DNA from: Callorhinchus milii
Taxonomy: Eukaryota
Length of the DNA: 64,000 bases
Reading direction: 5' to 3'
Assembly: GCF_018977255.1 (NCBI RefSeq)
Contig: NW_024704781.1
Location: 620,001-684,000, forward strand
The notes beneath the pieces are model-generated. The model saw nothing but the letters and a program-made list of their open reading frames with translations, did no database searches and was not told the DNA's origin. Made by a program: the position numbers and the translations under genes. Shown piece by piece: positions 26,701 to 58,807 of the stretch; position 1 is the first letter of the stretch; every line of letters begins with the position of its first letter.

Positions 26701-27458
26701 ATATCTTATTCTACACTCCACTGTGCAGTGTTAGAGTTGTGTGGGTGAGTGTAGCTCTCCACAGCTCTCTATGGTTCACTATTGCTTTCACTTTCGATCG
26801 TTTTGTAGCCATTTGCTGCCAAAAGCTGAAACCAAAATATTGCACTGAGAGGATGGCCACAGTAGTTATTGTAATTCTATCTATTTTCATCTGCGCAATA
26901 AGCATTCCTTGGTATTTTATATTTGATCCTTATATTATAATTGACAATACTCCATGGTACTGTGTCTTCAAATCAAGCTTTCATACCATGGGCACCTGGA
27001 AAGCATTTGAAAGGCTTCACCGTATTGTTGCTCCCATGTTTGGCTTTTCTTTCGTTTGCCTGTTTAACGCTCTGACTATAAGGCACATTATGATGACTAA
27101 CGAAGTCCGCAGGAGGCTTCGCGATCAGAGAAATGCTGAGAAAACAATTGATCCAGAGTTAGAAAACCGAAGAAAATCCGTCATTTTACTCTTCGCCATA
27201 TCGGGCAGTCTTATACTGCTGTGGATAACTTTTGTCACATATTCCTTCAAATGGCAACTTTCTAATTATAATTACACCGCAACGTATGTCAATAATATGC
27301 GGTATGTTGTGCAAGAAACCGGAGTCATGCTTCAAAGGTTAAGTTGCTGTTCCAACACTTGTATTTATGCCTTAACTCAGACTAAATTCAGAGAGGAGCT
27401 CAGGAAAGGAATCGTTTATCCATTTCATATCATTGTTAAATTCATAAAGTTAAGGTAA
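23788..27458 (+). CDS. GPR139/142-like class A GPCR, copy 1 (exons 23788-23857 + 26548-27458; 326 aa)
   Basis: Exon 1 MGQTTLYAIIAIYYPMLAAFGIP with GTAAGT donor; acceptor ctcgcag; in-frame join. Seven hydrophobic segments, TM2 AVADL, TM3 C...FDRF, TM7 NTCIY. Confidence 0.92.
24935..25300 (+). mobile_element. CR1 LINE 3' fragment in the GPCR intron (repeated at ~35865-36225 and ~46725-47080)
   Basis: Decayed match to the CR1 RT C-terminal LER.QRRFTRM..G...Y.ERL..LGL..LE.RRLRGD.IE.YKI pattern. Confidence 0.6.
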
Positions 27459-29419
27459 GACTTGCCTTCGCACATTGTAGAACTTCAGGAATAAGAGTGA
27501 ATGCATCCACAAAAAGGGAAGTCTGATAACATGATGAACCAATCCGCATTATGCGCTCGTTGTACCTGAATAAGAAGAGATGTTTGATTGTATATTGAAA
27601 GACAAACTGTCACAAATAAGTTATGAAAGGTGTTTCAGCTTAACGTGCTCTCCTTCACGGAAGTGTTATTAAAACTTGTTATTCCGAAGCACTTTATTTG
27701 TTGTGTGAATAAATATTGGGAATAAAATAAAATACATTGAATTCTGTTGAACATCTAAAAAGAACAACAGCCTGGCCCCTTCATGAGGAGCTTTCCATCG
27801 TGGATCTTTCAAATAAAAATGGAAATCACATTTGATGTCACGATTTTCACTTTTTCCAGACGTCGCTATGCGCTTCTCAGAATATATTGTGAAGTGAATT
27901 GAATTTCTATGTGTGGGCGAAAGGCGGCAGTGATTGTGCATATCAGGATCTCATACACAGTCGTGAATTGAGTGACCAATTGTTGTTGCTTTTTTTTTTG
28001 GAACGATTATTAACCCCGTAAATACCAAAAAGATTCCTATTGCTACCATGTAAACAGAGGCTGGGTGGCTTGAGGAATAGAAGAGTGTGTGAGTGATGGA
28101 ATTAGGTGTGGATGCTGGGTAGGTTGAGTTGAGGGTCTGTTGCTGGAGGGTTGTTCCTTCTGTCCTCCCAACTTTGTCAGCAAACCCTTGAAGCGCTTTT
28201 TACGCGTCCGCTTGGCGTGAAAAGCTCCAAATCAAATCAAAGGATCATAAAATACAACAAAATATTTCATTTGTACAGTGCTTTTCACAGCGGGATGATG
28301 TCCCAATGCCGAATTATTACTGCTTTAATGAAATAGAAAAACACATAAACTTTCAGATTTTAAGGATTTATTTCGCAGCTAATCACGTATAATATTTGGT
28401 TTGGCGTTTTACCTCTTTCAATGTTTTGAGGAAAATTTACAGAACAAGTATTAAGATGGTCGCTGTTGGTAACACAGAAAACCCTGCTCAGAAGCACATT
28501 TGGTCTGTCGCCACTGAAACCTGTTGTTCCCTCAGAACTTATATTTGCATATCTCACATTTGAAACCATTTCCAGCTCTCTCCCCAGTTGGAGCATCAGA
28601 ATTGCGAGACAATACAAGACCAGGATCCACCAGTTCATATCCATCAATCCCCAATGTCCTGTCCGTAAATGTATACTGTCTCCCAAGATATAATTTCCTA
28701 AAATAAATATATCTGATTTGAAGGAATCAACACTTTCTTCTTCAACCATCTCCCAAGGAAGCCAGTTTCACATCGTTACTGTTCTCTCAATGAAACTATG
28801 TTGAAGGCTTGTTTTGAAGATCAATTGCAGGCAATGTCCTCTGTTTTGCCGACCAATCTATACGCCTACTGCCATTACCATTCCGGAGATTCCAGTGATG
28901 CGAAAGTGTGGAAAACAGTGAACTGATGACAAAGTGAGATAGAGAGAGAGAGAGAGAGGGATGGGTCTCTGGTCAACGTGCTGACAGTGTGGAAGAGAAA
29001 GTAGAGGTGAAATGTCTTCACAGGGGACGCGTCTCTTCACCAGATGCCTTCAGAGGAGGACTTTAAGTGATTCCTGCTTTCTTTTCAACTTTTCATTGCA
29101 TTTGGCTTGGATTAAGACACATTCAGTGCATAAATTGCTAACGTTGAATATTGCTATTAAATTCAGTAGCGTCATTGGTCTTGCTGAGGTTTGAATAATC
29201 CTGTTTCTAAACCAGACAGCCCCACGGTTCTCCGTGGCACTGTTTATGATAGCCCAGCTCACATGTACAATTGCCTTCATCAGATCTAGGCTCAATTACG
29301 TTATCTATCTGCTTCTAGGCCTTTCCAACACTTCTCACCACAAGATCATCCAGAACTTTACAGCCCGTCTCCTCTCCCACACCAGACTCCATGAAAACAA
29401 CAGCAAGAACAAGATTGCA

Positions 29420-30510: not shown

Positions 30511-32045
30511 TTTTGCATTCTATGAAGTGGCAAATCAGTTATTGGGTGTAGTGACTCTTTGTTTCAGCACCCGTTAACCCTGCTAAATAAAGAGCTAAAT
30601 TCTACGATGGTCCTTCTTGGATTTGCCTCGGGAAAGCAGTGCTTTGCATTTCAATTTGTTAGTTGTTTAATTTCTAGGAACACATGGATTCGCACTGTTT
30701 GTTTTTTGTCAACTTGCATCTGATTCGCGTCCTGCGGTTTAATGTAAGCCCATTCCAAATACAGGTTCTTTCCACCTGTAGATGGCATGAGACTCGTAAT
30801 TTGGTTTCGAACATTGTAATCATATTGATGATGTTCAGAAATACGGCAGTCGCCCAGAAGTGTTCCTACAGAGTGGATAGTGATGGAAATATTTTCCAAA
30901 ATATTCTAAAAGTTGGGGTTGTCAAAATATATTCTTGGAATAGATACAATGCTTCCACAGCATGATACAATTAGTGAATCAAACAAATGCAATGGAATCG
31001 TTTCATCCCCTTTGGTGGGGAACGTAGAGCCACATCAAGGTCTCTTCTCCGTGTGGCTTAAGTCGGGGAAAATGGACTCCAGAAAAAAAAAGTATGTATT
31101 GCTGTGCTGATCAGGAAAATTGCGTACCCTGCCATAGAAAATGTTTTTGGCAATGTTTGGCAAGCTGCTCGCTTCATATCCTGCTTGGACCACTCAACCG
31201 ATTAGGACTTCGGGTTTGTTGAGATTATGCTTGTTCCCAATAAATAGCTCTCGACTGTCCAGCGAAGTTGGATAGCCTCCAGAATTGAAATCCGATCTGT
31301 TGTTTTTAGAGATGAGCCAGGCTGGCTGGTCTGTCATCAGCTGCATCCTTCAGTAATGACAAGCAACCCGACTCCCAACCAAGACAACCAAGATCACCAA
31401 ATTCGATTGATTTGCTTCTGATATTCAGTTGCCAAGCGTCTGGCCTTGGTGCCAGCTCAGACTCGAGGACACATCGCTTCCAAATTAAGCAGTTTTTATT
31501 TATGGATTCCTAACCCTATCCGCGCAGCACGCAATTGTAAAGTACGTTGCATGCGTGGCGGCGTTTCTAAGCCATTATTAATGCTTCAACTTAAGAATAA
31601 ATTTGTGAACAAAGAGTAAGAGTTGATTGATCATTTACGGTTTGCTACCTCAGCATCAAAACCGTTTCCATGAAACATAATTTTATGGAATAGAAACCAA
31701 ACGCTGAGAAATGTCTCACCAGAGTGAGCAAAATTTCCATGTTTGCAGATGATGCAAAGCTAGGAAACGAAGTAAACGGTGAAGCGGATAGTAGCAGACT
31801 GCAGGATATCTTGACAGACTGGTGGAGTGGGCAGATACATGGCAGATGAACCGTAATGTGGCAGAATAAGAAGTGATGCATTTTGTGTACCAGAAAGAGA
31901 AGGATAAGATAAGCTAAATGGTGCATTTTTTAGGGGCTGCAGGAGCTGAGAGAGCTGGGGAATTACATCAATAACTCTTGAAGGTGCTGGGAAAGCCAGA
32001 TACAGCTATTCGAAAAAGCACACAGGAACCTTGGCTTTAAAAAAT

Positions 32046-32939
32046 CACGTCAGCGCCTCCGCACCTCAGGCGCTGACAGCATCAGCATCCAAGGCTGCAC
32101 TCTCAGCCTCTCAAAGCCAGTCAGGAACCTTGCTGTTCTGTTCGACCCTGAATTGTCCTTTCTCCATCATATCCGCGCCGCAACTGGCACCGCCTTTCAT
32201 CACCTCCGGAATATAGCCAGACAACGGCACTACCTCACCCCTCACGCGGCTGAAACTCTGGTCCATGCCTTTATCACCTCAAGGCTGGACTATGGGAACT
32301 CTCTCCTCGCCGGCCTTCCCGCCACCTCCCTCCACACTGCGGGGTATTCAGAACTCTGCAGCTCGTGTACTGTCCCGCACCAGACACCGCACCCACATCA
32401 CTCCCACCCTCGCCCTCGCTCGCCTCCACTGGCTCCCCATCCCCCAGAGGATCGAATTCAAGGTCCTCATCCTCACCTACAAGGCCATTCACGGTCTTGT
32501 TCCCTCCTACGTCTCTGGCCTACTATCCCCCTACCTAACTGCCCGTATCATCCGTTCCTCTGGCTCCGGTCTGCTCCATATCCCCCGCCCCAACCCCCCT
32601 ACCATCGGTAGCCGGGCCTTCAGCCTCTCAGCCCCGAGGCTCTGGAACTCTATCCCCCAGTGCCTTCGCCGCTTCCTCCCTTTCCTCCTTCAAGGCTGGT
32701 CTCATGACCTTTCTCTTTGATCGCGCCTTCAGCTCCCCTCTGGACTCTCTTCCCCCGCATCGCTCCCACCCTTCCCTCCCCTCACCCTGACCATTTCCCC
32801 CCTCCTCTCTCCCTCCCTTCCCTCCCCTCACCCTGACCATTTCCCCCCTGCTCGGGTCCTGACCCAACTGTACATCGCCTTGGGACGTCCTCCCGACGTG
32901 AAAAGCACTCTATAAATGGAATCTTGTTGTTGTTGTTGT
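32046..32939 (+). mobile_element. 5'-truncated L2 in unit U1
   Basis: Homologous to 22206-23046; AETLVHAFITSRLDYGNSLLAG; (TTG)n tail. Confidence 0.9.
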
Positions 32940-32949
32940 AATTCATACA

Positions 32950-33300: not shown

Positions 33301-34945
33301 CACAGAATTTTCAGACTTTCATTTATAACAATGCTTTGAAGTAAAGACTGGCACAAATATTAGATAAGAATATAGATGTTTATTAATTAAGATTAGTAAT
33401 GGTATTGGTAGTTAAAATAATATGACAAAGTAATGTTTACGCATCCATGTATGGTTCACAACGGTTAAGATCGTACAACCCAAATTTTGAGAAAGTGGTG
33501 GAGGACTAATATCCGATTTAATGTAAGATTTATTGTCCTATTCATTGTCTGATTTAGTTTAGGATTTAACGGCAAAATTAGTGTCCATTTTACTGTCCGA
33601 TTTAATCCACCAAATGGTATCCATTTACAGATGTATTATTTTCCGCTTGAGACCGTCGACAAAGTTGTTGACATTCTTCTAAGTCTTAGTCTTGATTTTC
33701 CATCTTTAGAAGTAGGAATATGGACAGCGACTCCAAGTTCCAGCTCCTTGCCGTTTCTGATTCTGTTCCCGAACCGATCAGTTTTTTATCGAAGAACCCA
33801 ATATGACCCGCTCAGCCTTGTATCCTCCTCCGAAACAAAATCCTCGTCTGCTATGACCTCTCCTTTCCTGTTATCACAACTTACATTCTTGCATTTAACA
33901 CAAACACACTTGGTCACGACAAAGATTTTCTCGCCAGATTATCGTGTTTCTCCTTATAAGTTAAAGGCAATACAGAACTTTACCGATTATGTCCTTTTCC
34001 ACACAAGGCTCCACAAGCCTTCAACTGCACCTATCTGTTTCCGTTTGCTCTCCAAACCCCAGAAAATTGATTTCAAGAATCTATTCCTCACGCTCAATAC
34101 ACTCATACTCCTTTCTGAATTTACTACTGTGACCTCTTCAAACAAAAATAATCCGGCTGCTCTCATCACACACTAAGCCTCGCCACCATTTGTGATTCCA
34201 CCCTACTTGTCCCACCTTCAGTGATCGGGTTTTCGGACAATCTGCCTGTCCACTCTCTGTAACTCATTCTCAGAGTGCCTAAAGCCCAAACTGGCGGGCG
34301 ATTTGTTAATGAATATTGATGTTGTTACTGTTTTTGAAAGCAGGACTTGCTCGATCACACATCATTTTCATGATTCGTATCAAGACCTTCCCCGTCCACC
34401 ACGCTCATGCTCATCTTTCCCGTTCACACCCCTTCCTCGGGTCTCAATATTCCACGCTCAAGTATGTGACTGTTAACTATTTTTACTTTACACAATCCCA
34501 TTCACTACCCCGCGTGAAAATAGCTTCACAGAAGCATTTTATACATGCAAGAAACACTGAATTTTCAGCGCCCTGGAACGTCTTTCCGACGTGAAACGCA
34601 CTATAAAAGTGTACGTTTTTGTTGCTCTTTTGTTCTTGTTGTACGTCCTGTGAAATGTTTTCAATATTTTTATTCCTATCTTTCTGTTTTTATTTTATTC
34701 TACGCTTAATTTTTTGCGTATTTTTATGTATCTTGTTTTCAATTCACAATAACAAATTTAATTCGAGGATTACGTTTAGAATGCTCAAGTGAATACATTA
34801 TCTTATTTGTTCACATGACTGGAAGTAATTGCATTCATGATGCAAGATGTAGATTCGTGTTCCCTATAAGTACAAATTTATTTCAATGTAACGGCATTGT
34901 GTTCATTGAAGTCTCTGCCTTCAGCAACAATATGTAAAACAGAGC

Positions 34946-37900
34946 ATGGAACAAACAACGTTGTATGCAATAATTGCTATTTACTACCCAATTCTTGTAG
35001 CATTTGGAATTCCAGGTAAGTCTAATTGGTCGCAATGTTAGCAATAATTTATAGGTTACTCCACTGGGTGACAGAAGACATTTTATAAAAAGTGACATAT
35101 CGGGTTATTCATGTCCGTAGAGAAATATGTATATATTTATCGAATGACATTATAATGCAATGCACATAGGAGCAAATGTAGCAGGGAGTAGAGGTACAAT
35201 GCCCCCAAACTATGGAACACTGTCCGTCATTCCCATTGCCTTGCCGTCTCTCTCCCCTCGTTAAACTCCCGCCTGTAAACTTTTCTGTTCGACTGTGATT
35301 ACGCCTACACTCACCGTCCGCCCGGATCGCAGTCAGGCTCCGCTACTGTTAAGCTCTGAGACGCCACCTTGCGTGGAGTGCTCTTTATAATTGCAAGTTG
35401 TTGTTGGTGGTGTTGTTATAATCTACAGGAATCGTTGTTCCCTCACAAAGCCTTCTATTTCCCTCTCACTCGGGTGAAGGTCTATTTTCCACTTGAAGGC
35501 ATCTAATACAATCATCGATTCAGGCAACAGCTTCCACATGCTCCTGCCATCTGCAGTTCTTTGTCATTTGAATTTCCGATCCTGTCATCGCTATCCTGTG
35601 TCCCCTGGTAACGGACTCCCCATAAAGTTTCATCAGCTTCCCAAATCGACATGACGTGATAGATCCCGGTCTATCTATCCTATCCGACATCCCTGACCAG
35701 AATCGCTCGATCTTAGCTTTTCTGCAGTACCCACCGTTTTTGACGATATAGTTCACACAGGACGTGGAGTCGGAAACGGAAGCAATACACCTACCTTTGT
35801 ACAAATCATTGCTTAGGCCGCAACTGGAGATTTCCATTCAGCCTTGTGCATCTCTTTTTAGGAAATAAGTCAAGGAATTGGAGAGTTGAGAGAAGCTTTT
35901 CAAGAATGTCACTGGGGATGATGGACTTTTATAATGAGGAATGATTGGACAAGTTGGCTCTAGTTTTATTGGAGCAGATAAGGTCGATAAGGGACATTAT
36001 AGAGGCATAAAAATATGTAGGATTTTGAGAGGATATACAGTGAGAATTTTTTTCACCATTGGAATGTCGCCGCCTCGTTGTCAAGTTATGTTAGTTCGAA
36101 GAAGAAGGAAATATGGAGGTTTGGTTATTTTATTACTCAGAATATTGTTGGAATGTGGAATGCCCTGCCTATAAGGTAATAGAGGCATAGCCCAGTTTGG
36201 GATTAAAGAGGAAAGTAGATGCGTTTGTAAAAAAGAGCCTAATAATGGTATAAGGATATTTGGGGCAGTAAAACCGAAAGCAAATTATCCCCTGGAAGAC
36301 CCTATGGACCGAATGTACTCCTTTGTGTGGTACAGTCTCCGATTTTATTTGGACTCCACTGAATCGAAATAAATCTGGAATCTGATATAATATTTGTAAC
36401 TTTTAATCCAGTTAAATTGTTATTGAAAGGAACTGATTAATTTTGGATCTGAAAAGTAAAATTGAGTCCTATTGCTGGAGCTATGTGGCAAAAGCTCCAC
36501 GCTTCAAATAATTTCGAAAACTATAATACTGTTTTAGGCTGTGATGGATTATTTATATAATCTAGTGATTCAGTGTTTACTATGGATGATAAATAATTAC
36601 CCCTATTTACAAGATTGTTGTTTTCTTGATTTTTGTATATTTCACCTCTTCTAAAATTTATGTAATCCATCTGATTTTACAAATGCTGTCGAAAATAACA
36701 AATGTTAAAATCATCTCTTTTCACTTTGGGAATTGTAAGGGAGACTGATGGACACCACCAATGCAGTGGTGGAAAAGAAAATGAAGGTAATCTTAAAACT
36801 GAGAACATAGATCCAGTCGAATTGGTATTGATTCCACTGGAACGTGCGCAGACCCATCTCGACACAACTCCAACATTTCAAAGTTACATGTTTCTCAGAG
36901 ATAGCCTCCACCCTTCGTAGGCTGCGAGTGATCTTTGACGAGGCACTTTCGCCAAAGGAAAATAATGGATATGGATAGCTAATGGGAAGGAATTCTGTTT
37001 TTTAGTCTTAACCTAACCGGACGCCAATGAACGCGTTTATCTCTCTCTGAGTCCACTATTTCAAATCTGCGCGCAAGGACACAATTACTCAATTCCTAGA
37101 TGGGAGGATGAAATCGGACACAGGGTCCGAGCGAGGGAATGTCATCAGAATCTGAATTTTTCAGGAAATTTCTCTTTGGAAGTAATTGAAACGGTTCAAA
37201 GTAAGCTCTGCCGAACATAACGTAGATTTACATTTCTAATCAAACTAAATTATGTGAATGAATAATGTTCTCGTGCAATGATTAATGATCATTTGAAGAT
37301 GTTTCTTTGCGCTTTACGTGATTGATTTCCTGTAAACTGCACTAACTGTATTTTGTTTGAAAATTTTTGAAACAATTCAAACAAAGCGCAACCAAATATG
37401 ACACAGCTTTACATTTTTAACATCATTTTTATTCATATTAATTAGGTTTTCTGTTTTTATTGCTTCTCGCAGTTAATTTGCTGGCGATTGCGGTCCTGTC
37501 AAGAGGAAAGTGTGGTCTCTCCAAGTGCATCACTCGCTATTTGGTAGCCATGGCAGTGGCTGATCTCCTGGTTGTCTTTGTAGATGTGTTGTTGAACAAA
37601 ATTAACAATCTCTATTTCCCATTAAATATCTTATTCTACACTCCACTGTGCAGTGTTAGAGTTGTGTGGCTGAGTGTAGCTCTCCACAGCTCTCTATGGT
37701 TCACTATTGCTTTCACTTTCGATCGTTTTGTAGCCATTTGCTGCCAAAAGCTGAAACCAAAATATTGCACTGAGAGGATGGCCACAGTAGTTATTGTAAT
37801 TCTATCTATTTTCATCTGCGCAATAAGCATTCCTTGGTATTTTATATTTGATCCTTATGTTATAATTAACAATACTCCATGGTACTGTGTCTTCAAATCA

Positions 37901-38383
37901 AGCTTTCATACCATGGGCACCTGGAAAGCATTTGAAAGGCTTCACCGTATTGTTGCTCCCATGTTTGGCTTTTCTTTCGTTTGCCTGTTTAACACTCTGA
38001 CTATAAGGCACATTATGATGACTAACGAAGTCCGCAGGAGGCTTCGCGATCAGAGAAATGCTGAGAAAACAATTGATCCAGAGTTAGAAAACCGAAGAAA
38101 ATCCGTCATTTTACTCTTCGCCATATCGGGCAGTCTTATACTGCTGTGGATAACTTTTGTCACATATTCCTTCAAATGGCAACTTTCTAATTATAATTAC
38201 ACCGCAACGTATGTCAATAATATGCGGTATGTTGTGCAAGAAACCGGAGTCATGCTTCAAAGGTTAAGTTGCTGTTCCAACACTTGTATTTATGCCTTAA
38301 CTCAGACTAAATTCAGAGAGGAGCTCAGGAAAGGAATCGTTTATCCATTTCATATCATTGCTAAATTCATAAAGTTAAGGTAA
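34946..38383 (+). CDS. GPR139/142-like GPCR, copy 2 (exons 34946-35015 + 37473-38383; 326 aa)
   Basis: Exon 1 MEQTTLYAIIAIYYPILVAFGIP; canonical splice sites; open exon 2. Confidence 0.92.
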
Positions 38384-41300
38384 GACTTGACTTCGCACAT
38401 TGTAGAACTTCAGGAATCAGAGTGAATGCATCCACAAAAAGGGAAGTCTGATAACATGATGAACCAATCCGCATTATGCATTTGTTGTTTCCAAATAAGA
38501 AGAGATGTTTGACTGTATATTGAAAGACAAACTGTCACAAATAAGTTACGAAAGGTGTTTCAGCTTAACGTCCTCTCCTTCACGGAAGTGTTGAAAACTC
38601 GTTATTCCGAAGCATTTTATTTGTTGTGTGAATAAATATCTAAAAAGAACAACAGCCTGGCCCCTTCATGAGGAGCTTTCCATCGTGCTTCTTTCAAATA
38701 AAAATGGAAATCACATTTGATGTCACGATTTTCACTTTTTCCAGACGTCGCTATGCGTTTCTCAGAATATGTTGTGAAGTGAATTGAATTTCTATGTGTG
38801 GGCGAAAGGCGGCAGTGATTGTGCATATCAGGATCTCATACACAGTCGTGAATTGAGTGACCAATTGTTGTTGCTTTTTTTTTTGGAGCGATTATTATCC
38901 CCGAAAATACCAAAAAGATTCCTATTGCTACCATGTAAACAGAGGCTGGGTGGCTTGAGGAATAGAAGAGTGTGTGAGTGATGGAATTAGGTGTGGATGC
39001 TGGGTAGGTTGAGTTGAGGGTCTGTTGCTGGAGGGTTGTTCCTTCTGTCCTCCCAACTTTGTCAGCAAACCCTTGAAGCGCTTTTTAGGCGTCCGCTTGG
39101 CGTGAAAAGCTCCAAATCAAATCAAAGGATCATAAAATACAACAAAATATTTCATTCGTACAGCGCTTTTCACAGCGGGATGATGTCCCAATGCCGAATT
39201 ATTACTGCTTTAATGAAATAGAAAAACACATAAACTTTCAGATTTTAAGGATTTATTTCGCAGCTAATCACGTATAATATTTGGTTTGGCGTTTTACCTC
39301 TTTCAATGTTTTGAGGAAAATTTACAGAACAAGTATTAAGATGGTCGCTGTTGGTAACACAGAAAACCCTGCTCAGAAGCACATTTGGTCTGTCGCCACT
39401 GAAGCCTGTTGTTCCCTCAGAACTTATATTTGCATATCTCACATTTGAAACCATTTCCAGCTCTCTCCCCAGTTGGAGCATCAGAATTGCGAGACAATAC
39501 AAGACCAGGATCCACCAGTTCATATCCATCCATCCCCAATGTCCTGTCCGTAAATGTATACTGTCTCCCAAGATATAATTTCCTAAAATAAATATATCTG
39601 ATTTGAAGGAATCAACACTTTCTTCTTCAACCATCTCCCAAGGAAGCCAGTTTCACATCGTTACTGTTCTCTCAATGAAACTATGTTGAAGGCTTGTTTT
39701 GAAGATCAATTGCAGGCAATGTCCTCTGTTTTGCCGACCAATCTATACGCCTACTGCCATTACCATTCCGGAGATTCCAGTGATGCGAAAGTGTGGAAAA
39801 CAGTGAACTGATGACAAAGTGAGATAGAGAGAGAGAGAGAGAGGGATGGGTCTCTGGTCAACGTGCTGACAGTGTGGAAGAGAAAGTAGAGGTGAAATGT
39901 CTTCACAGGGGACGCGTCTCTTCACCAGATGCCTTCAGAGGAGGACTTTAAGTGATTCCTGCTTTCTTTTCAACTTTTCATTGCATTTGGCTTGGATTAA
40001 GACACATTCAGTGCATAAATTGCTAACGTTGAATATTGCTATTAAATTCAGTAGCGTCATTGGTCTTGCTGAGGTTTGAATAATCCTGTTTCTAAACCAG
40101 ACAGCCCCACGGTTCTCCGTGGCACTGTTTATGATAGCCCAGCTCACATGTACAATTGCCTTCATCAGATCTAGGCTCAATTACGTTATCTATCTGCTTC
40201 TAGGCCTTTCCAACACTTCTCACCACAAGATCATCCAGAACTTTACAGCCCGTCTCCTCTCCCACACCAGACTCCATGAAAACAACAGCAAGAACAAGAT
40301 TGCATTTGTATTGCACCATTGAAGTAGGGAGGACGTCCCTAGGCGCTGGACATTGTACAGCATTTCAGACCCGAGCTGAGGTACAGGGGCAGAAGGGAAG
40401 GGAGGGCATGATGGATGGCCAATGGCATGGTCGAAGAGGAAGGTTTTGAGGCGGGATTTGAAGGAGGGAAACGATGGGCGAGACTGAATAATTGGGAATG
40501 GAGTACCAGAAGTTGGTGACAGAGTGGCTGAAGGCTCTCCCGTCAATATTGTGGCGGGTGGACCGTGGACGTGAAGCAGGCAAGAGAGAGGCTAACCGGA
40601 GAAAGCGGGCGGGTTGCTAGGATATTTCGTGGTCACTGGGACAGGCTGGGGCGAGACCATTGAGGGCTTTGTATGTGAGGACCAGGATTTTCAACTGGAT
40701 CCTCTGAAGAATAGGGAGCCAATGGAGTCGGGCGAGAGTGAGGGAGATGGGGCACGGAAATTGGTGCGGGAGGGGGGCACGGGCTGCAGAGTTCTGGATT
40801 ATATGCTGCCTGTAGAGGGAGGAGTTGGGAAAGCCGACAAGCAGGCCGTTTGCATAGTCGAGCCTTTCGGTAGTGAAGGCATGAACAAGGGTTTCACGGG
40901 CATGAGGGTTGACGTCGTGGCCGAGTCGGGCGACACCATCATCAATACCATCACCTGGCTCCACTGGCTGCCCAACCCCAGAGGGTCGAGTTCAAAATCC
41001 CCCTCCCCGTCTTCAAGGCCCTACATGGCCTGGACACTCCCTGCTTCTGCGATATGCTGAACTCAGATCAACATGCCAGATTTCTCCGCTCAGCAGGTTG
41101 TGGCCTGGTCCTCGTCTCCCTCATGGCACATTGCATTACCAGTGCTGTCCCTTCAGCCATTCTTCTTCCACGCTGTGGAATTCCATCCCACATTGCCTTT
41201 GCCTCGCTCCCTCCCTTGACTTAGTAAAGATAATTAGACTTCTCAAAACACTTCTCTTCGAACGAGCCTTCGATCATCCTCCTACCATCCTTGCGCTACA

Positions 41301-42930
41301 TCCTCCCCGATTCCGACTCCTAGCTCTGGTCCAAACCCCAAATATGCATCGCTTTGGGACGTCAGTCTGACGTGAAATGAGCTTTACAAATGTAATTTTG
41401 CATTCTATGAAGTGGCAAATCAGTTATTGGGTGTAGTGACTCTTTGTTTCAGCACCCGTTAACCCTGCTAAATAAAGAGCTAAATTCTACGATGGTCCTT
41501 CTTGGATTTGCCTCGGGAAAGCAGTGCTTTGCATTTCAATTTGTTAGTTGTTTAATTTCTAGGAACACATGGATTCGCACTGTTTGTTTTTTGTCAACTT
41601 GCATCTGATTCGCGTCCTGCGGTTTAATGTAAGCCCATTCCAAATACAGGTTCTTTCCACCTGTAGATGGCATGAGACTCGTAATTTGGTTTCGAACATT
41701 GTAATCATATTGATGATGTTCAGAAATACGGCAGTCGCCCAGAAGTGTTCCTACAGAGTGGATAGTGATGGAAATATTTTCCAAAATATTCTAAAAGTTG
41801 GGGTTGTCAAAATATATTCTTGGAATAGATACAATGCTTCCACAGCATGATACAATTAGTGAATCAAACAAATGCAATGGAATCGTTTCATCCCCTTTGG
41901 TGGGGAACGTAGAGCCACATCAAGGTCTCTTCTCCGTGTGGCTTAAGTCGGGGAAAATGGACTCCAGAAAAAAAAAGTATGTATTGCTGTGCTGATCAGG
42001 AAAATTGCGTACCCTGCCATAGAAAATGTTTTTGGCAATGTTTGGCAAGCTGCTCGCTTCATATCCTGCTTGGACCACTCAACCGATTAGGACTTCGGGT
42101 TTGTTGAGATTATGCTTGTTCCCAATAAATAGCTCTCGACTGTCCAGCGAAGTTGGATAGCCTCCAGAATTGAAATCCGATCTGTTGTTTTTAGAGATGA
42201 GCCAGGCTGGCTGGTCTGTCATCAGCTGCACCCTTCAGTAATGACAAGCAAACTGACTCCCTACCAAGAGAACCAAGATCACCAAATTCGATTGATTTGC
42301 TTCTGATATTCAGTTGCCAAGCGTCTGGCCTTGGTGTCAGCTCAGACTCGAGGACACATCGCTTCCAAATTAAGCAGTTTCTATTTATGGATTCCTAACC
42401 CTATCCGCGCAGCATGCAATTGTAAAGTACGTTGCATGCGTGGCGGCGTTTCTAAGCCATTATTAATGCTTCAACTTAAGAATAAATTTGTGAACAAAGA
42501 GTAAGAGTTGATTGATCATTTACGGTTTGCTACCTCAGCATCAAAACCGTTTCCATGAAACATAATTTTATGGAATAGAAACCAAACGCTGAGAAATGTC
42601 TCACCAGAGTGAGCAAAATTTCCATGTTTGCAGATGATGCAAAGCTAGGAAACGAAGTAAACGGTGAAGCGGATAGTAGCAGACTGCAGGATATCTTGAC
42701 AGACTGGTGGAGTGGGCAGATACATGGCAGATGAACCGTAATGTGGCAGAATAAGAAGTGATGCATTTTGTGTACCAGAAAGAGAAGGATAAGATAAGCT
42801 AAATGGTGCATTTTTTAGGGGCTGCAGGAGCTGAGAGAGCTGGGGAATTACATCAATAACTCTTGAAGGTGCTGGGAAAGCCAGATACAGCTATTCGAAA
42901 AAGCACACAGGAACCTTGGCTTTAAAAAAT

Positions 42931-45801: not shown

Positions 45802-48800
45802 ATGGAACAAACAACGTTGTATGCAATAATTGCTATTTACTACCCCATGCTTGCAGCATTTGGAATTCCTGGTAAGTCTACTTGGTCGCAATGTTAGCAA
45901 TAATTTATAGGTTACTCCACTGGGTGACAGAAGACATTTTATAAAAAGTGACATATCGGGTTATTCATGTCCGTAGAGAAATATGTATATATTTATCGAA
46001 TGACATTATAATGCAATGCACATAGGAGCAAATGTAGCAGGGAGTAGAGGTACCATGCCCCCAAACTATGGAACACTGTCCGTCATTCCCATTGCCTTGC
46101 CGTCTCTCTCCCCTCGTTAAAGTCCCGCCTGTAAACTTTTCTGTTCCACTGTGATTACGCCTACACTCACCGTCCGCCCGGATCGCAGTCAGGCTCCGCT
46201 ACTGTTAAGCTCTGAGACGCCACCTTGCGTGGAGTGCTCTTTATAATTGCAAGTTGTTGTTGGTGGTGTTGTTATAATCTACAGGAATCGTTGTTCCCTC
46301 ACAAAGCCTTCTATTTCCCTCTCACTCGGGTGAAGGTCTATTTTCCACTTGAAGGCATCTAATACAATCATCGATTCAGGCAACAGCTTCCACATGCTCC
46401 TGCCATCTGCAGTTCTTTGTCATTTGAATTTCCGATCCTGTCATCGCTATCCTGTGTCCCCTGGTAACGGACTCCCCATAAAGTTTCATCAGCTTCCCAA
46501 ATCGACATGACGTGATAGATCCCGGTCTATCTATCCTATCCGACATCCCTGACCAGAATCGCTCGATCTTAGCTTTTCTGCAGTACCCACCGTTTTTGAC
46601 GATATAGTTCACACAGGACGTGGAGTCGGAAACGGAAGCAATACACCTACCTTTGTACAAATCATTGCTTAGGCCGCAACTGGAGATTTCCATTCAGCCT
46701 TGTGCATCTCTTTTTAGGAAATAAGTCAAGGAATTGGAGAGTTGAGAGAAGCTTTTCAAGAATGTCACTGGGGATGATGGACTTTTATAATGAGGAATGA
46801 TTGGACAAGTTGGCTCTAGTTTTATTGGAGCAGATAAGGTCGATAAGGGACATTATAGAGGCATAAAAATATGTAGGATTTTGAGAGGATATACAGTGAG
46901 AATTTTTTTCACCATTGGAATGTCGCCGCCTCGTTGTCAAGTTATGTTAGTTCGAAGAAGAAGGAAATATGGAGGTTTGGTTATTTTATTACTCAGAATA
47001 TTGTTGGAATGTGGAATGCCCTGCCTATAAGGTAATAGAGGCATAGCCCAGTTTGGGATTAAAGAGGAAAGTAGATGCGTTTGTAAAAAAGAGCCTAATA
47101 ATGGTATAAGGATATTTGGGGCAGTAAAACCGAAAGCAAATTATCCCCTGGAAGACCCTATGGACCGAATGCACTCCTTTGTGTGGTACAGTCTCCGATT
47201 TTATTTGACTCCACTGAATCGAAATAAATCTGGAATCTGATATAATATTTGTAACTTTTAATCCAGTTAAATTGTTATTGAAAGGAACTGATTAATTTTG
47301 GATCTGAAAAGTAAAATTGAGTCCTATTGCTGGAGCTATGTGGCAAAAGCTCCACGCTTCAAATAATTTCGAAAACTATAATACTGTTTTAGGCTGTGAT
47401 GGATTATTTATATAATCTAGTGATTCAGTGTTTACTATGGATGATAAATAATTACCCCTATTTACAAGATTGTTGTTTTCTTGATTTTTGTATATTTCAC
47501 CTCTTCTAAAATTTATGTAATCCATCTGATTTTACAAATGCTGTCGAAAATAACAAATGTTAAAATCATCTCTTTTCACTTTGGGAATTGTAAGGGAGAC
47601 TGATGGACACCACCAATGCAGTGGTGGAAAAGAAAATGAAGGTAATCTTAAAACTGAGAACATAGATCCAGTCGAATTGGTATTGATTCCACTGGAACGT
47701 GCGCAGACCCATCTCGACACAACTCCAACATTTCAAAGTTACATGTTTCTCAGAGATAGCCTCCACCCTTCGTAGGCTGCGAGTGATCTTTGACGAGGCA
47801 CTTTCGCCAAAGGAAAATAATGGATATGGATAGCTAATGGGAAGGAATTCTGTTTTTTAGTCTTAACCTAACCGGACGCCAATGAACGCGTTTATCTCTC
47901 TCTGAGTCCACTATTTCAAATCTGCGCGCAAGGACACAATTACTCAATTCCTAGATGGGAGGATGAAATCGGACACAGGCTCCGAGCGAGGGAATGTCAT
48001 CAGAATCTGAATTTTTCAGGAAATTTCTCTTTGGAAGTAATTGAAACGGTTCAAAGTAAGCTCTGCCGATCATAACGTAGATTTACATTTCTAATCAAAC
48101 TAAATTATGTGAATGAATAATGTTCTCGTGCAATGATTAATGATCATTTGAAGATGTTTCTTTGCGCTTTACGTGATTGATTTCCTGTAAACTGCACTAA
48201 CTGTATTTTGTTTGAAAATTTTTGAAACAATTCAAACAAAGCGCAACCAAATATGACACAGCTTTACATTTTTAACATCATTTTTATTCATATTAATTAG
48301 GTTTTCTGTTTTTATTGTGTCTCGCAGTTAATTTGCTGGCGATTGCGGTCCTGTCAAGAGGAAAGTGTGGTCTCTCCAAGTGCATCACTCGCTATTTGGT
48401 AGCCATGGCAGTGGCTGATCTCCTGGTTGTCTTTGTAGATGTGTTGTTGAACAAAATTAACAATCTCTATTTCCCATTAAATATCTTATTCTACACTCCA
48501 CTGTGCAGTGTTAGAGTTGTGTGGGCGAGTGTAGCTCTCCACAGCTCTCTATGGTTCACTATTGCTTTCACTTTTGATCGTTTTGTAGCCATTTGCTGCC
48601 AAAAGCTGAAACCAAAATATTGCACTGAGAGGATGGCCACAGTAGTTATTGTAATTCTATCTATTTTCATCTGCGCAATAAGCATTCCTTGGTATTTTAT
48701 ATTTGATCCTTATGTTATAATTAACAATACTCCATGGTACTGTGTCTTCAAATCAAGCTTTCATACCATGGGCACCTGGAAAGCATTTGAAAGGCTTCAC

Positions 48801-49238
48801 CGTATTGTTGCTCCCATGTTTGGCTTTTCTTTCGTTTGCCTGTTTAACACTCTGACTATAAGGCACATTATGATGACTAACGAAGTCCGCAGGAGGCTTC
48901 GCGATCAGAGAAATGCTGAGAAAACAATTGATCCAGAGTTAGAAAACCGAAGAAAATCCGTCATTTTACTCTTCGCCATATCGGGCAGTCTTATACTGCT
49001 GTGGATAACTTTTGTCACATATTCCTTCAAATGGCAACTTTCTAATTATAATTACACCGCAACGTATGTCAATAATATGCGGTATGTTGTGCAAGAAACC
49101 GGAGTCATGCTTCAAAGGTTAAGTTGCTGTTCCAACACTTGTATTTATGCCTTAACTCAGACTAAATTCAGAGAGGAGCTCAGGAAAGGAATCGTTTATC
49201 CATTTCATATCATTGCTAAATTCATAAAGTTAAGGTAA
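45802..49238 (+). CDS. GPR139/142-like GPCR, copy 3 (exons 45802-45871 + 48328-49238; 326 aa)
   Basis: Exon 1 MEQTTLYAIIAIYYPMLAAFGIP; canonical splice sites; open exon 2. Confidence 0.92.
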
Positions 49239-51999
49239 GACTTGACTTCGCACATTGTAGAACTTCAGGAATCAGAGTGAATGCATCCACAAAAAGGGAA
49301 GTCTGATAACATGATGAACCAATCCGCATTATGCGCTCGTTGTACCTAAATAAGAAGAGATGTTTGATTGTATATTGAAAGACAAACTGTCACAAATAAG
49401 TTATGAAAGGTGTTTCAGCTTAACGTGCTCTCCTTCACGGAAGTATTATTAAAACTTGTTATTCCGAAGCATTTTATTTGTTGTGTGAATAAATATTGGG
49501 AATAAAATAAAATACATTGAATTCTGTTGAACATCTAAAAAGAACAACAGCCTGGCCCCTTCATGAGGAGCTTCCCATCGTGCTTCTTTCAAATAAAAAT
49601 GGAAATCACATTTGATGTCACGATTTTCACTTTTTCCAGACGTCGGTATGCGCTTCTCAGAATATATTGTGAAGTGAATTGAATTTCTATGTGTGGGCGA
49701 AAGGCGGCAGTGATTGTGCATATCAGGATCTCATAAACAGTCGTGAATTGAGTGACCAATTGTTGTTGCTTTTTTTTTTGGAGCGATTATTATCCCCGAA
49801 AATACCAAACAGATTCCTATTGCTACCATGTAAACAGAGGCTGGGTGGCTTGAGGAATGGAAGAGTGTGTGAGTGATGGAATTAGGTGTGGATGCTGGGT
49901 AGGTTGAGATGAGGGTCTGTTGCTGGAGGGTTGTTCCTTCTGTCCTCCCAACTTTGTCAGTAAACCCTTGAAGCGCTTTTTACGCGTCCGCTTGGCGTGA
50001 AAAGCTCCAAATCAAATCAAAGGATCATAAAATACAACAAAATATTTCATTTGTACAGTGCTTTTCACAGCGGGATGATGTCCCAATGCCGAATTATTAC
50101 TGCTTTAATGAAATAGAAAAATACATAAACTTTCAGATTTTAAGGATTTATTTCGCAGCTAATCACGTATAATATTTGGTTTGGCGTTTTACCTCTTTCA
50201 ATGTTTTGAGGAAAATTTACAGAACAAGTATTAAGATGGTCGCTGTTGGTAACACAGAAAACCCTGCTCAGAAGCACATTTGGTCTGTTGCCACTGAAAC
50301 CTGTTGTTCCCTCAGAACTTATATTTGCATATCTCACATTTGAAACCATTTCCAGCTCTCTCCCCAGTTGGAGCATCAGAATTGCGAGACAATGTAAGAC
50401 CAGGATCCACCAGTTCATATCCATCCATCCCCAATGTCCTGTCCGTAAATGTATACTGTCTCCCAAGATATAATTTCCTAAAATAAATATATCTGATTTG
50501 AAGGAATCAACACTTTCTTCTTCAACCAACCCCCGAGGAAGCCAGTTCCGCACAATTACTGTTCTCTCAATGAAACTGTGTTGAAGCAGACTTGTTTTGA
50601 AGATCAAATGCAGGCAATGTCCTCTGTTTTGCCGACCACTCTATAGGCCTCCTGCCATTACCATTCCTGAGAATGAGCGCTACAGGGAAGGAATATCACT
50701 TCTCTCGTTACTGTTACAGGCAGAATTTTTGTGTATCAAGAGCTTGAAAACTGTTGCACCCTGCCGTGAATTTAAACTCAGACTTGGGTAAGTTCCTTTT
50801 ATGAAGTACAGCTAACCAGCAGCAGAATTTCTCCTGATATCAAAGGTTTGCCAAATCCTGCCAATTTCCAAATGTTACATAAACAATATAAATGTCGACT
50901 CTGGTGGAATTCGGCCCAGGAAGCCTTTCCATATCAAGGAGACTCATCCTGTCCAATAAAATCCTTCACGTGACGAATTTTGTATACGGGACACCTGCGG
51001 ATAAATCCAAGAACATTTGCAACTTGTTATGGAAACTTCGGTAGAAAGGAATTCTGCAACAAAAGAAGGACTTTCATCTCTATGGACCCACATCAGCACA
51101 GATTGTGCCACGAGACAACCACTGAGAAGACAAAAAGGGTGTTGGGCGACCTCCTGAACCCGCTCAGGTCCAAATACTTAGAAATTATCATGAAACTGCA
51201 CAGATGTTGTTCAAGCTGCAACTGGACATTATCAAAAGAGATTTTACATAAAATTCTGCAGCTGCATGCGCAGCTCTTCATCACTAATTTTGGCACTGGC
51301 CCAGAAGATTGTGATAATTTAATAATCCTTTGTTCAATATAGCGTCTTATCACTTGATTGAGAAGAATCAAATCACTTAACAGCATTTACAGTATAAAAA
51401 GAGAATATCGCTCCCTCCCCTCACCCCATCGCAGCCATCCTGTTATACTTTCTTACTGCTTGGAAAACGGAGGTGTGTGGAGTGAGGATATCTGCCTAAG
51501 CTGTCGTCGTGCCCATGAATTCAACATGGGTCTTCCAGATAGCGAGGAGAGAGTTATATTCACTCAGATACAGGAAGTTAGATGCAGCTACAATGATGTA
51601 TACCTTCTGAGAATTGTTTTAGCAATTCTAAACTACCCTAAACTACATTTAGGGAGTCAGCCTGGCTCACCTGGTACCAATTATTTTCTAATTTAGACCC
51701 TTGTATTCAATTCCTATGGTTTCTTCTTGCTCTGACAACGAAGGACTGCATTTTCATCCCCAACACTTCAATAGGGTGTCAACTTGGGTTACGTGATTAC
51801 AGGAAACGACTGGAGCTTGAAACCACAGCTTTCTGACTCAGAGGCGAGAGTGTTCTCATTGAGTCAGGCTGGAAAAGAATAATATTTATCGCGCTTTAAA
51901 AAAATCTCAGTTTAGTGTAACTAGCAACAATTCCCATTGAACCAAGGATCTGTCGTGTTTCCATCTGTACAATCTGCAATGCTGTACTGAAGCTTTATT

Positions 52000-56050: not shown

Positions 56051-58807
56051 ATGGCATATTTAACCATTTATGACGTGGAGGCAATTTACTACCCCATACT
56101 TGCAATACTTGGTGTTCCTGGTAAGATTTCCTACATATTAATTATCATATGCATCGCCGACTCGCTGTGTATTCTGTTAATTATGGTACAGCCTGAGTTT
56201 GTGCATCGTTCAGGGTTAACAGGCGCCAAGTGGGAAGAGTTTTCAGTTGGCACTGCCCAATTGTCGGTGGTGGGTGGGCGGAAGGTAAGTGGGGTATCCA
56301 TTAACAGAGCTGGTTCCAAAGTGAAATGCTTGCCAAACAAATTTCAGATCCCAGTCTATCAACTGCCAGTCTTGAATTTGGAGCACCTGAGCCTGGTTTC
56401 TCTGTCTCGTTCATCGGGTATATCGTACTCCTGGATACTGATGATAATAATAATAATAATAATAATAATCCTTGCATTTGATATAGCGCTTTTCACGTCG
56501 GAAGGACGTCCCAAAGAGCTTCACAGAACACACTGTAAAGTGAATTGACTGTAAATTTGTGGTCGAACGCGGCAGCCAATTGCGCACAGCAATGTCCCAC
56601 AAACAGTCGTGGATTGAAAATGCCAATTTTATTATTGTTTTTGGTTTTGGAGGATTATTATTAGGCTCTGTGTGGAGTAAGGAAACTTACCCGAGGTTTC
56701 GCCCTCTGCCTGGAATTGAACTCAGGTCTCTCGTTTGCAAAGCAAGTGCAACTGAGCTACAGGACTCCACGATAATAATCCAGCTAGTCTGGCTCATCGG
56801 TTGGACCTGGAGAGGCATTGAGAAAACGGAATTTTCTCTCTCAGCTCCTGCTGATGCTGAAAGCCAAAAGGCTAACTGATAGGACTGTCCTAACGGGAGA
56901 GATAGCAGCAAAGCTGGCCAGATAGTCGTATTGAATTGCAAGCAATGCTGTTTCAGTTGATCAATTTCCCGCAATACCCCACAAAGCACACAGACATCAA
57001 CACACCTTAACCCGCTGTTTTAGATACTGCGTATACCTTACCACATTGTGGGGCAAACAGGGTGCAAACATAGAGGGAGAGATTGCACACTGTATTCCAG
57101 GCACTTAGAAATCTCTGTGTATTTGGCATATATGTGGAACGCTTAGTTGGACTTCTGCTGAATCAAACAGTCAACTGGTCAAAATACACTCTGACTTCTG
57201 AGTCAGAAGATTGTCTTCAGTGCAAGTTACATGTTAGGACTTCCACCTCATATTCAAGGCTGAAATTATTATGATAGAAGGAGCTGCAGTGTCGCAGATG
57301 CCAACGTTCATTTGAAATTTTGAAACGTCGTCCCATCGGCCTTTTCAGGTGGACATTGGAAAAGAGAAGGCTGTTAATCCTGAGAAACAACATTTTCCAA
57401 GAATCTAGTCATTTTCCTCGTTGTTGTTTATGCGAATATTTTCTGTCTGAATTGCTAGTTTTGTTTCCCTGTTCTGGTTTGCCCACAAAGTTAACAGTGA
57501 AGCCCTTTATAATTTTTGTCCTTGAAGCAATTCACATGTCTCACCTATGTGATCAATTGCGTTTTCAGATGCAAACATTATTATTATTATTGCTCATATA
57601 CGGTTGTTGTGCATTCAACGAAAAGTTTCTAAAGCATTTTGAGAAACTCAAGCATGTTTAGACGTTATATAAAATGTAAGTATTACTCAAGATTAAATAA
57701 TACCGCTGTTTAAATACAATTTTTTTTATCACTGAAAGAATAGCATATTGAGTGATTTGGGATGAACCTTTTGGAAGCTGTTGGAAATTGTCTGACCCGT
57801 TCGCCAGTAAAAATAATCCAATTGATGCTCTATGATATGAACCACTGTACCAAGTATAAGGATTCTTGCTTTAATTTGTCTTTTCCTATTTTCTTGCAGT
57901 TAACTTGATGGCGATGCTGATCCTTTCCCGTGGAAATTGTGGTCTCGCCAAAGGCGTCACCCTTTACCTGGTAGCCGTGGCGGCAGCCGATCTGATGGTC
58001 ATTATCACGGATGTAATACTGAATCGCATTAATAGTTTTTATTTCCCTATTAGTTTCTTGTTCTATACGCCCGTGTGCAGTCTCAGAGTTGTTTTGATGG
58101 CTACAGCCATAAGATGTTCTGGCTGGTTGACTGCAGTTTTCACCTTCGACCGTTATGTGGCTATTTGTTGTCAGAGGTATAAAACTACATATTGCACTGT
58201 GAAAACTGCCTATTTGGTTATAACAGCAGTCAGTGTGATAAGCTGTGTCCAAAGCATTCCCTGGTATTTTGTGTTTGCTCCTGTTATAAAAATTAACGAT
58301 GTACCATATTACTGCACTGGAAAACCCAGCACATACACTTCACCAATATGGAGAGCGTTTGGGTGGTTTAACCGAATTTTTACTCCTATTGCTGTATTTC
58401 TTTTGATTGTCCTCTTCAATGCGTTAACCATCAGACACATTTTAACAGCCAGCAGGGTCCGCAGGAGAATACGGGTCAATAAAAATGGGGAGAATCAGAA
58501 CGATCCAGAGATAGAAAAGCGAAGAAAATCCATAACTTTACTATTTGCTATATCGGCCAGTTTTCTATTGTTATGGATTACGACTGTTATCTACTCATTG
58601 AAATGGACAATAACAAGTTATAATTATGAAACACGAGTGAATAACTCTCGATATATCTTCCAACAGACGGGATTTATGCTTCAACTTTTGTCTTCCTGTA
58701 CAAACACGTGTATATATGCGGGAACCCAAACCAAGTTTAGAGAGGATCTGAAGAATGTGGTTAAATATCCTTTTACTCTTATTCGACTTAAACAAGACGA
58801 TCATTAA
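56051..58807 (+). CDS. Divergent GPR139/142-like GPCR, copy 4 (exons 56051-56120 + 57900-58807; 325 aa, or 342 aa from in-frame ATG 56000)
   Basis: Exon 1 MAYLTIYDVEAIYYPILAILGVP with the same 70-nt phase-1 structure; acceptor ttgcag at 57899; FDRY and NTCIY motifs. Confidence 0.92.
56443..56770 (-). mobile_element. Full-length tRNA/Deu-type SINE with (TTA)n tail in the intron of GPCR copy 4
   Basis: Head 56700-56770, core aacgcggcagccaattgcgcacagcaatgtcccacaaacag, L2-type tail, (taa)n. Confidence 0.85.

Follow-up and report, generated by a model that had tools for sequence, protein, structure and literature searches.

Three receptor genes stand in tandem in a 64,000-nucleotide stretch of DNA from Callorhinchus milii, a holocephalan or chimaera-type fish (hereafter the window), and they are nearly identical except that each encodes a different residue at position 3.32, in the third transmembrane helix (TM3). 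The question raised by this locus is whether such a codon records selection for new ligand specificities or a more ordinary course of evolution in a receptor family. The original prediction took the former view, holding that young duplicates are being diversified at a principal position of the ligand pocket.

Four receptor genes and their position 3.32

The + strand of the window contains four class A GPCR genes of two exons each, and in all four we found GT-AG splicing and an intact open reading frame. Exon 1 of copy 1 (23788-23857) reads MGQTTLYAIIAIYYPMLAAFGIP, followed by the first base of codon 24 and a GT donor; exon 2 (26548-27458) follows an AG acceptor and encodes residues 24-326 and the stop codon. 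The exons of copy 2 lie at 34946-35015 and 37473-38383, those of copy 3 at 45802-45871 and 48328-49238, and those of copy 4 at 56051-56120 and 57900-58807, all on the + strand.

These genes matched Pfam 7tm_1 (PF00001) above the gathering score (E=3.6e-16 for copy 1, and 2.1e-17). In an alignment of 87 sequences, conservation of the class A signature residues N25, D54, D107-R108-F109, W249, N293...Y297, C83 and C162 was complete or no lower than 90%; the departures from the usual pattern were DRF instead of DRY, Thr instead of Pro at 7.50, and a residue other than Pro at 6.50. An AlphaFold (AF2) model (pLDDT 84, pTM 0.82) showed seven helices, helix 8 and a beta-hairpin in ECL2, and Foldseek matched the model with probability 1.00 to many class A receptors of peptide and orphan types, GPR139 included. 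Pfam, the signature residues and the predicted fold agree, and we concluded that the window genes are class A (rhodopsin-like) GPCRs.

The codon of interest is the 8th residue from Cys3.25, and this Cys lies exactly 25 residues ahead of the Arg of FDR(F/Y); the two spacings place the codon at position 3.32 (residue 90). Its sequence is as originally read: GTG Val in copy 1 (26745-26747), CTG Leu in copy 2 (37670-37672), GCG Ala in copy 3 (48525-48527) and ATG Met in copy 4 (58097-58099). The four genes had been described as near-identical copies, which holds for copies 1-3 (98.6-99.1% identical in DNA) but not for copy 4, which has only 56% residue identity to the others. As an old paralogue, copy 4 is uninformative on the young duplicates.

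A young tandem triplet

Copies 1-3 lie within a tandem segmental duplication at 23224-50672 with a period of ~10.86-10.93 kb, in which gene blocks (~23224-28889, 34380-39774 and 45237-50672) are separated by spacers containing LINE fragments. The percentages given above are those of the array units in a self-BLAST. The array is free of gaps, the only run of N in the window being at 9566-9731. Non-coding divergence between the units was 1.5-1.65%, which confirmed that copies 1-3 are young duplicates. Each unit was set apart by dozens of private and shared differences, along with indels of 234 and 38 bp, and mutations in the units were visibly clustered.

A simple ((2,3),1) tree was rejected, as polarised sites backed the groupings 2+3, 1+3 and 1+2 inside 1.5 kb. 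This conflict indicates that the ancestry of copies 1-3 is mosaic, and derived states were shared among them in a pattern resembling gene conversion. The three genes are products of a recent tandem duplication of a ~10.9 kb unit, probably through unequal crossing-over, and the copies appear to have swapped short tracts afterwards by gene conversion.

Comparison of exon 2 gave the differences that had been counted by eye. Copies 1 and 2 differed at five nonsynonymous sites (V/L at 3.32, I/V, D/N, A/T and V/A) and one synonymous site (TAC/TAT), and copies 2 and 3 differed at two bases of the 3.32 codon and one synonymous site (TTC/TTT), with nothing else. The further statement that copies 2 and 3 differ solely in this way is correct for exon 2 but not for exon 1, where M16I, A18V and a pair of synonymous substitutions separate them; M16I and A18V are private to copy 2 and lie within a tract in which copy 2 is the odd one. 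In total, the exon 2 events were six nonsynonymous and two synonymous. The extracellular side held four of the six nonsynonymous events, two of them in codon 3.32 and the others at residues 153 and 156 of ECL2.

A Callorhinchus homologue, which bears a 1-bp frameshift, has CTT Leu at 3.32, the residue also found in copy 2. Polarised by this homologue, the codons suggest a series Leu -> Val -> Ala. Two single-base nonsynonymous steps would have occurred in the short history of the triplet, from CTG Leu (copy 2, ancestral-like) to GTG Val (copy 1) to GCG Ala (copy 3), and the side chain would have become smaller at each step. We rejected a single dinucleotide mutation, because copy 1 has one base in common with each of the other copies and two separate events are therefore required. 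CpG decay was likewise rejected as the cause of the double change; given the CTT outgroup, the path CTG -> GTG -> GCG makes a CpG and destroys none.

Does the triplet itself carry a signature of selection? The long-term pN/pS relative to Callorhinchus was 0.30, indicating that the genes are functional. Between copies, pN/pS was 0.38-0.85 and pN was below the non-coding divergence. Measured against the long-term ratio, the 6:2 split of exon 2 events had P about 0.17 (a binomial estimate made by hand). Among non-coding triplet windows of the duplicated units, 5/4388 differed in all three copies; this rate predicts 0.37 triple-different codons per 326-codon gene, or P=0.31 for at least one. An intronic dinucleotide at 26538-26539 (+ strand, ~10 nt before the acceptor of exon 2) is one such control, reading CG/CT/TG in the three copies. 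The triple-different codon is in keeping with the density of mutations at this locus. Evidence of selection within the window is weak, these results did not bear out the claim that the copies are being diversified by selection, and three copies are too few to tell selection from chance as the source of their differences.

Position 3.32 across the cartilaginous-fish family

The window genes fall in a large family that is automatically annotated as 'probable GPR139'. A search returned 2155 proteins at E<=1e-20, and the best 120 were all from cartilaginous fishes except one unnamed metaclust entry. The best match to a window gene had 78% identity; no record of the exact product of the copy 1 open reading frame was found, and nothing among the matches exceeded that value. 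A scan covering 1.84 billion proteins gave 114 representatives (at the 50% identity level) with E<=1e-30, beyond which scores fell sharply. Distant relatives with 25-32% identity occurred in salamanders, coelacanth and teleosts. Paralogues carrying automatic NCBI names, for example from Callorhinchus milii, Heptranchias perlo, Heterodontus francisci, Mobula and Scyliorhinus, share 50-78% of their residues with the window genes over the full length, are likewise ~322-326 aa long, and have in common with them N1.50, D2.50, FDRF, W6.48, NTCIY, and Cys3.25 with its ECL2 Cys. Like the window genes, these paralogues tend to occur as young, near-identical copies within one genome. The Heptranchias locus gave one gene per 27 kb. 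Judged from sequence, the window genes are members of a 'GPR139-like' orphan family expanded in chondrichthyans. In the literature searched, we found no paper on a GPR139-like expansion in sharks or chimaeras, which does not prove the family undescribed, and those on shark chemoreceptors made no mention of a GPR139-like family.

Of the solved structures, human GPR139 (PDB 7VUG, 7VUH, 7VUI, 7VUJ, 9M42) lies nearest by sequence (E=7e-12 for a single-sequence query, 8e-20 with a family profile). It is an orphan receptor for which L-Trp and L-Phe are agonists, and it shares with the window-gene model the same fold and the ECL2 hairpin. Position 3x32 lines the GPR139 pocket (PMC8807744), and a His in copies 1-3 aligns with H187 5x43 of GPR139. 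Identity, however, is only about 20%. Where GPR139 has its hallmark Arg at 6x51, copies 1-3 have Phe252 and copy 4 has Thr; across the family (n=87) this site was Tyr in 50, Gln in 8, His in 6 and Arg in 4. In GPR139, D2x61, E3x29 and E3x32 are oriented toward the amino group of the ligands L-Trp and L-Phe, and these acidic residues are specific to GPR139, not being conserved in GPR142 (PMC8807744). They are replaced in the window genes by Asn65, Val87 and Val/Leu/Ala90, and all three sites are variable across the family. Cys3.25 is absent from GPR139 and present in the chimaera and shark family, and GPR139 proper fell outside the best 150 representatives of the protein scan. We therefore rejected membership of the GPR139/GPR142 subfamily, given the low identity, the missing Arg 6x51 and acidic pocket residues, and the place of GPR139 outside the best 150. 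Two candidates for true GPR139, P0359 and P0350, were rejected as well; neither had a strong PDB match, and one was a mollusc 'cysteinyl leukotriene receptor-like' protein.

Position 3.32 was 3rd of 326 sites of the family by entropy. Site rates were estimated under LG+G8 for 87 members, and here 3.32 came 14th of 326 sites and 6th among the 230 helix residues. The idea that 3.32 varies no more across the family than other sites do was thereby put aside. A set of 17 pocket positions, chosen in advance from the published GPR139 structure (PMC8807744), evolved faster than all sites (Mann-Whitney p=1.5e-4) and faster than helix residues (p=1.6e-5). For differences between 20 clusters of young paralogues, measured as between-cluster entropy, 3.32 came 2nd of 286 sites, and the clusters had 9 different consensus residues there. 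Sites that were both fast and subfamily-separating across the family included 3.32, 3.33, 3.29, 6.51, 7.31 and 7.39.

Differences were also counted within 20 independent clusters of shark and ray paralogues (at least 90% identity). Position 3.32 varied in only 3 of the 20 (Poisson p=0.15), pocket sites as a set were not enriched among the differences (p=0.59), and none of these clusters had three different residues at 3.32. The claim of current diversification by selection thus found no backing in the other young clusters. What supports the ligand interpretation comes from the family and not from the window.

Explanations of the triplet and their meaning

Position 3.32 is among the fastest and best subfamily-separating sites of the family, and the triplet is accordingly most likely an early stage of the family's ordinary birth-and-death diversification. 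We consider this reading probable, though well short of certain, and under it the fit of ligands probably varies slightly from copy to copy. Changes at 3.32 would be expected to alter pharmacology. Leu, Val and Ala are all conservative aliphatic residues, so the functional effect of the swaps may be nil. The same conservatism would suit a coincidence of two ordinary mutations in one weakly constrained codon, meaningless for function. Such a neutral origin is consistent with the non-coding null for one triple-different codon, with a ratio of nonsynonymous to synonymous events near the neutral 3.5:1, and with the clustering of mutations in the units. The codon that was struck, however, is among the top few subfamily-defining pocket sites of the 326, and the chance falls to roughly 0.02, a post hoc figure, if the codon must be among ~17-25 pocket positions. 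Moreover, 3.32 was conserved within 17 of the 20 young clusters, indicating that it does not drift freely, and we regard neutral coincidence as a possibility that would have less than an even claim.

Positive diversifying selection acting on 3.32 specifically would yield new ligand specificities while gene conversion homogenised the remainder of the gene. Of the three differences in exon 2 between copies 2 and 3, two lie in the 3.32 codon, and both are nonsynonymous. The ~3 kb flanking exon 2 are otherwise the least diverged stretch of the unit (8 differences between copy 2 and copy 3), as expected if one site resists homogenisation, and the high variability of 3.32 and the elevated rates of pocket positions across the family point the same way. 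Against this, adjacent sites that differ in all three copies also occur in the intron just upstream and elsewhere in non-coding DNA, pN/pS between the copies stays below one in every comparison, and 3.32 seldom varies within the other young clusters, whose differences show no enrichment at pocket sites. Selection of this kind is therefore unlikely on present evidence. An assembly or polishing artefact, by which a repeat was collapsed or over-expanded or consensus errors fell at 3.32, is highly improbable. Near-identical tandem repeats of 10.9 kb do assemble poorly, but this array lacks gaps, two haplotypes cannot give three copies, and the units carry many private and shared differences and two indels. 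In addition, two copies have a G in common (26745 and 48525) and copy 2 has the C of the outgroup, which indicates inherited states and not random errors. Taken overall, ligand diversification is a plausible but unproven reading of a real pattern.

Known chemoreceptor families offer a parallel to the birth-and-death reading. Like the chimaera and shark family, the OR, TAAR, V1R/ORA and T2R families form tandem arrays that evolve by birth and death with gene conversion, number hundreds of paralogues per genome, and focus their variability on pocket-lining positions of TM3, TM5-7 and ECL2. Large tandem arrays and variability centred on the ligand pocket, traits of a chemosensory type, are thus present here. 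By sequence, the window genes belong to none of these four families. OR and TAAR genes typically have one coding exon, unlike the window genes with their two. Canonical olfactory receptor repertoires are very small in cartilaginous fishes, and no GPCR was among the top 50 genes of a catshark 'brain & olfactory epithelium' library (PMC11979771). It is conceivable, though rather doubtful, that the 'probable GPR139' expansion is an unrecognised chemosensory or other ligand-diversified repertoire filling the gap left by very small OR, TAAR and V1R families, with 3.32 as its principal tuning residue and Leu-Val-Ala as a freshly selected series of steps in pocket size.

Cartilaginous-fish genomes hold thousands of annotated paralogues of this orphan family despite their very small canonical olfactory repertoires. 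If the changes at 3.32 are neutral, the locus is an ordinary young tandem duplication. A triplet that is ~99% identical, and whose exon 2 differs almost only at 3.32, amounts to a natural mutagenesis series, and three clones a few residues apart could show whether 3.32 tunes ligand choice and could help to find the ligands of the family.

Receptor genes and the tandem array

The window is eukaryotic, with ~36–50% GC and a sole N run at 9566–9731. We found four paralogous class A GPCR genes, all on the + strand, and tblastn with long ORFs as queries detected none further in the window. Their exons 1 and 2 were located at 23788–23857 and 26548–27458 (copy 1), 34946–35015 and 37473–38383 (copy 2), 45802–45871 and 48328–49238 (copy 3), and 56051–56120 and 57900–58807 (copy 4). 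In each gene exon 1 encodes 23 residues plus one base, exon 2 encodes the remainder, and the intron is phase-1, GT-AG and 1.8–2.7 kb long. The products (326 or 325 aa) all matched Pfam 7tm_1 (4/4), and all kept N1.50, D2.50, D-R-F/Y, W6.48, N7.49...Y7.53 and the Cys3.25/ECL2 cysteine pair. Copy 1 was modelled with AlphaFold (pLDDT 84, pTM 0.82); the model has seven helices plus helix 8, and its ECL2 forms a beta-hairpin. Its top structural matches were CCK1R, NTSR1, GPR139, TRHR and chemokine receptors. Upstream of the cluster were three immunoglobulin V-set exons on the − strand (7043–7519, 8115–8642 and 18694–19158; PF07686, E=5e-15 to 1e-11), the first two an 87%-identical pair, which could come from a gene for an Ig, a TCR or another V-domain receptor.

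Copies 1–3 lie in a tandem segmental duplication (roughly 23.2–50.7 kb, period ~10.9 kb) in which three gene blocks alternate with two spacers. DNA identity between units was 98.6–99.1%, so the original prediction of near-identical copies held for these three. It did not hold for copy 4, which is an old paralogue because only 56% of its residues are common to copies 1–3; it has the same exon structure with a 1.8 kb intron, and its residues 3.32 and 6.51 are Met and Thr. The cluster is a mix of old and young members. LINE-type reverse-transcriptase fragments (RVT_1, E=9e-21) occurred just upstream of unit 1 (21208–22970) and in each spacer (31982–32717 and 42867–43620). Identity was 88–93% among these fragments and between them and copies found on the Callorhinchus contig; they may have served as substrates for unequal crossing-over.

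A three-way alignment of the units contained 117 variable columns in 5.6 kb, strongly clumped in tracts with one copy as the odd one out; the least diverged stretch was the 3 kb made up of the intron and exon 2. One tract (23603–23867 versus 34760–35025), spanning exon 1 and the region upstream, held ~17 sites where copy 2 alone differed, and resembles a patch acquired from another paralogue by gene conversion. To polarize changes we used the closest Callorhinchus milii homologue (WEZY01002705.1, positions 10515–11409 of locus L001; ~85% DNA identity). Exon 2 of this homologue is frameshifted by a 1-bp insertion where ECL2 is encoded; the NCBI model (P0001, 303 aa) skips the insertion, and the homologue may be a pseudogene or contain a sequencing error. 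Derived states were common to copies 2+3, 1+3 and 1+2, all within 1.5 kb, and this mosaic sharing shows that the copies have exchanged tracts by gene conversion or recombination.

History of the 3.32 codon and the role of chance

Position 3.32 was assigned as the eighth residue from the TM3 cysteine because that Cys lies exactly 25 residues ahead of the DR(F/Y) Arg in all four copies. The codons were GTG (26745), CTG (37670), GCG (48525) and ATG (58097) in copies 1 to 4, as originally read. The predicted exon 2 counts were likewise exact: copies 1 and 2 differed at five nonsynonymous sites and one synonymous site, and copies 2 and 3 at a single synonymous site (TTC/TTT) and, within the 3.32 codon, at two bases. 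The claim that copies 2 and 3 differ nowhere else was correct for exon 2 only, as exon 1 also differed (M16I, A18V and two synonymous changes, all in the copy 2-specific tract).

The outgroup codon is CTT, and copy 2 retains its Leu. The first-position G is derived and common to copies 1 and 3, and copy 3 has a further second-position T-to-C change. The most economical history is Leu to Val to Ala by two single-base nonsynonymous steps. Between Callorhinchus and the window, a run of changes occupied the extracellular third of TM3 (26724–26760): T85V (3.27), I87V (3.29), L89W (3.31), 3.32 and M94L (3.36). For the same comparison, pN/pS was 0.39 in extracellular-half segments and 0.22 elsewhere.

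Could the 3.32 differences be an assembly artefact? This is unlikely, given that states are common to copies and to the outgroup, and that no gap was found inside the array when N runs were sought across the window. Unit-specific indels, a 234-bp segment confined to unit 1 (24038–24272) and a 38-bp deletion in unit 2 downstream of the gene (about 27715), speak for the copies being separate loci. Judged within the window, the 3.32 pattern exceeds chance weakly. Divergence between units was 1.5–1.65% in non-coding and 0.7–1.1% in coding sequence, and pN/pS for the three copy pairs was 0.75, 0.85 and 0.38 (Nei-Gojobori). Exon 2 events (6 nonsynonymous, 2 synonymous) were near the neutral 3.5:1; against the long-term Callorhinchus ratio of 0.30, P was about 0.17 (hand binomial estimate). 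As an empirical null we took triplet windows in the non-coding parts of the units, 5 of 4388 of which differed in all three copies, predicting 0.37 triple-different codons per gene (P of at least one = 0.31). Requiring the codon to be among about 17–25 pocket positions lowered the joint chance to ~0.02, a value unadjusted for post hoc selection. One of the five lies in the intron, ~10 nt before the acceptor of exon 2, where a dinucleotide reads CG, CT and TG (26538–26539, 37463–4, 48318–9; Callorhinchus CA) and so repeats, in non-coding sequence, the adjacent-site pattern of the 3.32 codon. Selection diversifying the three young copies is plausible but undemonstrated, because these numbers are compatible with drift.

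Relation to GPR139

Of the solved structures, GPR139 came closest (E=7e-12 from a single sequence, 8e-20 from the family profile). Nevertheless, the genes should not be filed as GPR139, because identity is only about 20% and key residues differ. Arg 6x51, singled out as restricted to GPR139 and GPR142 and critical for GPR139 (PMC8807744), is Phe in copies 1–3 and Thr in copy 4, and only 4 of 87 family members have Arg there; of the acidic residues D2x61, E3x29 and E3x32, none is retained in the window genes. The genes are members of a GPR139-like family of orphan receptors that is uncharacterised. Relatives at 25–32% identity, also auto-named 'probable GPR139', occurred in salamanders (Pleurodeles, Ambystoma, Lissotriton), coelacanth and teleosts (Odontesthes, Engraulis), and because of these the lineage must be old in vertebrates. 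A search of 5.8 billion proteins gave 2155 matches at E<=1e-20. Cartilaginous fishes supplied 119 of the 120 best, the exception being one unnamed metaclust entry; nearly all of those 119 bore the name 'probable G-protein coupled receptor 139'. Callorhinchus gave the best match (78% identity), with sharks and rays at 50–58%. Among 50%-identity representatives the family formed a distinct block, with 114 at E<=1e-30 before scores dropped steeply. The massive expansion seems confined to cartilaginous fishes. We found no papers on this expansion in the literature searched; shark chemoreceptor papers treat only OR, TAAR, ORA and V2R genes, and stress their scarcity.

Variability of 3.32 across the family

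Among 20 shark and ray paralogue clusters used as a control set (>=90% identity, 115 proteins, six species), 3.32 varied inside only three (V/L, C/S, T/I). The mean site varied in 1.35 clusters (Poisson p=0.15), and within-cluster differences in the 20 clusters showed no enrichment for the pocket set (permutation p=0.59). Between clusters, 3.32 had nine different consensus residues and ranked 2/286 in entropy. This is the signature of a subfamily-defining site, one that differs from subfamily to subfamily and usually stays the same among very young copies. The pattern argues that residue 3.32 matters, and shows that a young triplet with three 3.32 states is the exception.

Family site statistics, based on 87–90 members, placed 3.32 at rank 3/326 in entropy (I, L, Y, S, K, G, T, V and others) and 14/326 in LG+G8 site rate (6/230 among helix residues). 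Seventeen pocket positions, fixed beforehand from the GPR139 cryo-EM study (PMC8807744) and mapped via family-profile alignment to 7VUG, evolve faster than other sites when set against all sites (Mann-Whitney p=1.5e-4) or helix residues (p=1.6e-5), and 6/17 ranked within the top 33 (Fisher p=0.004). Because 3.32 is highly variable and pocket sites are fast family-wide, the expectation that 3.32 varies more than other sites survived. For the three copies, the original prediction of diversification for ligand specificity, read as selection, is plausible but undemonstrated; at family level, the data support 3.32 as a putative ligand-tuning hot spot.
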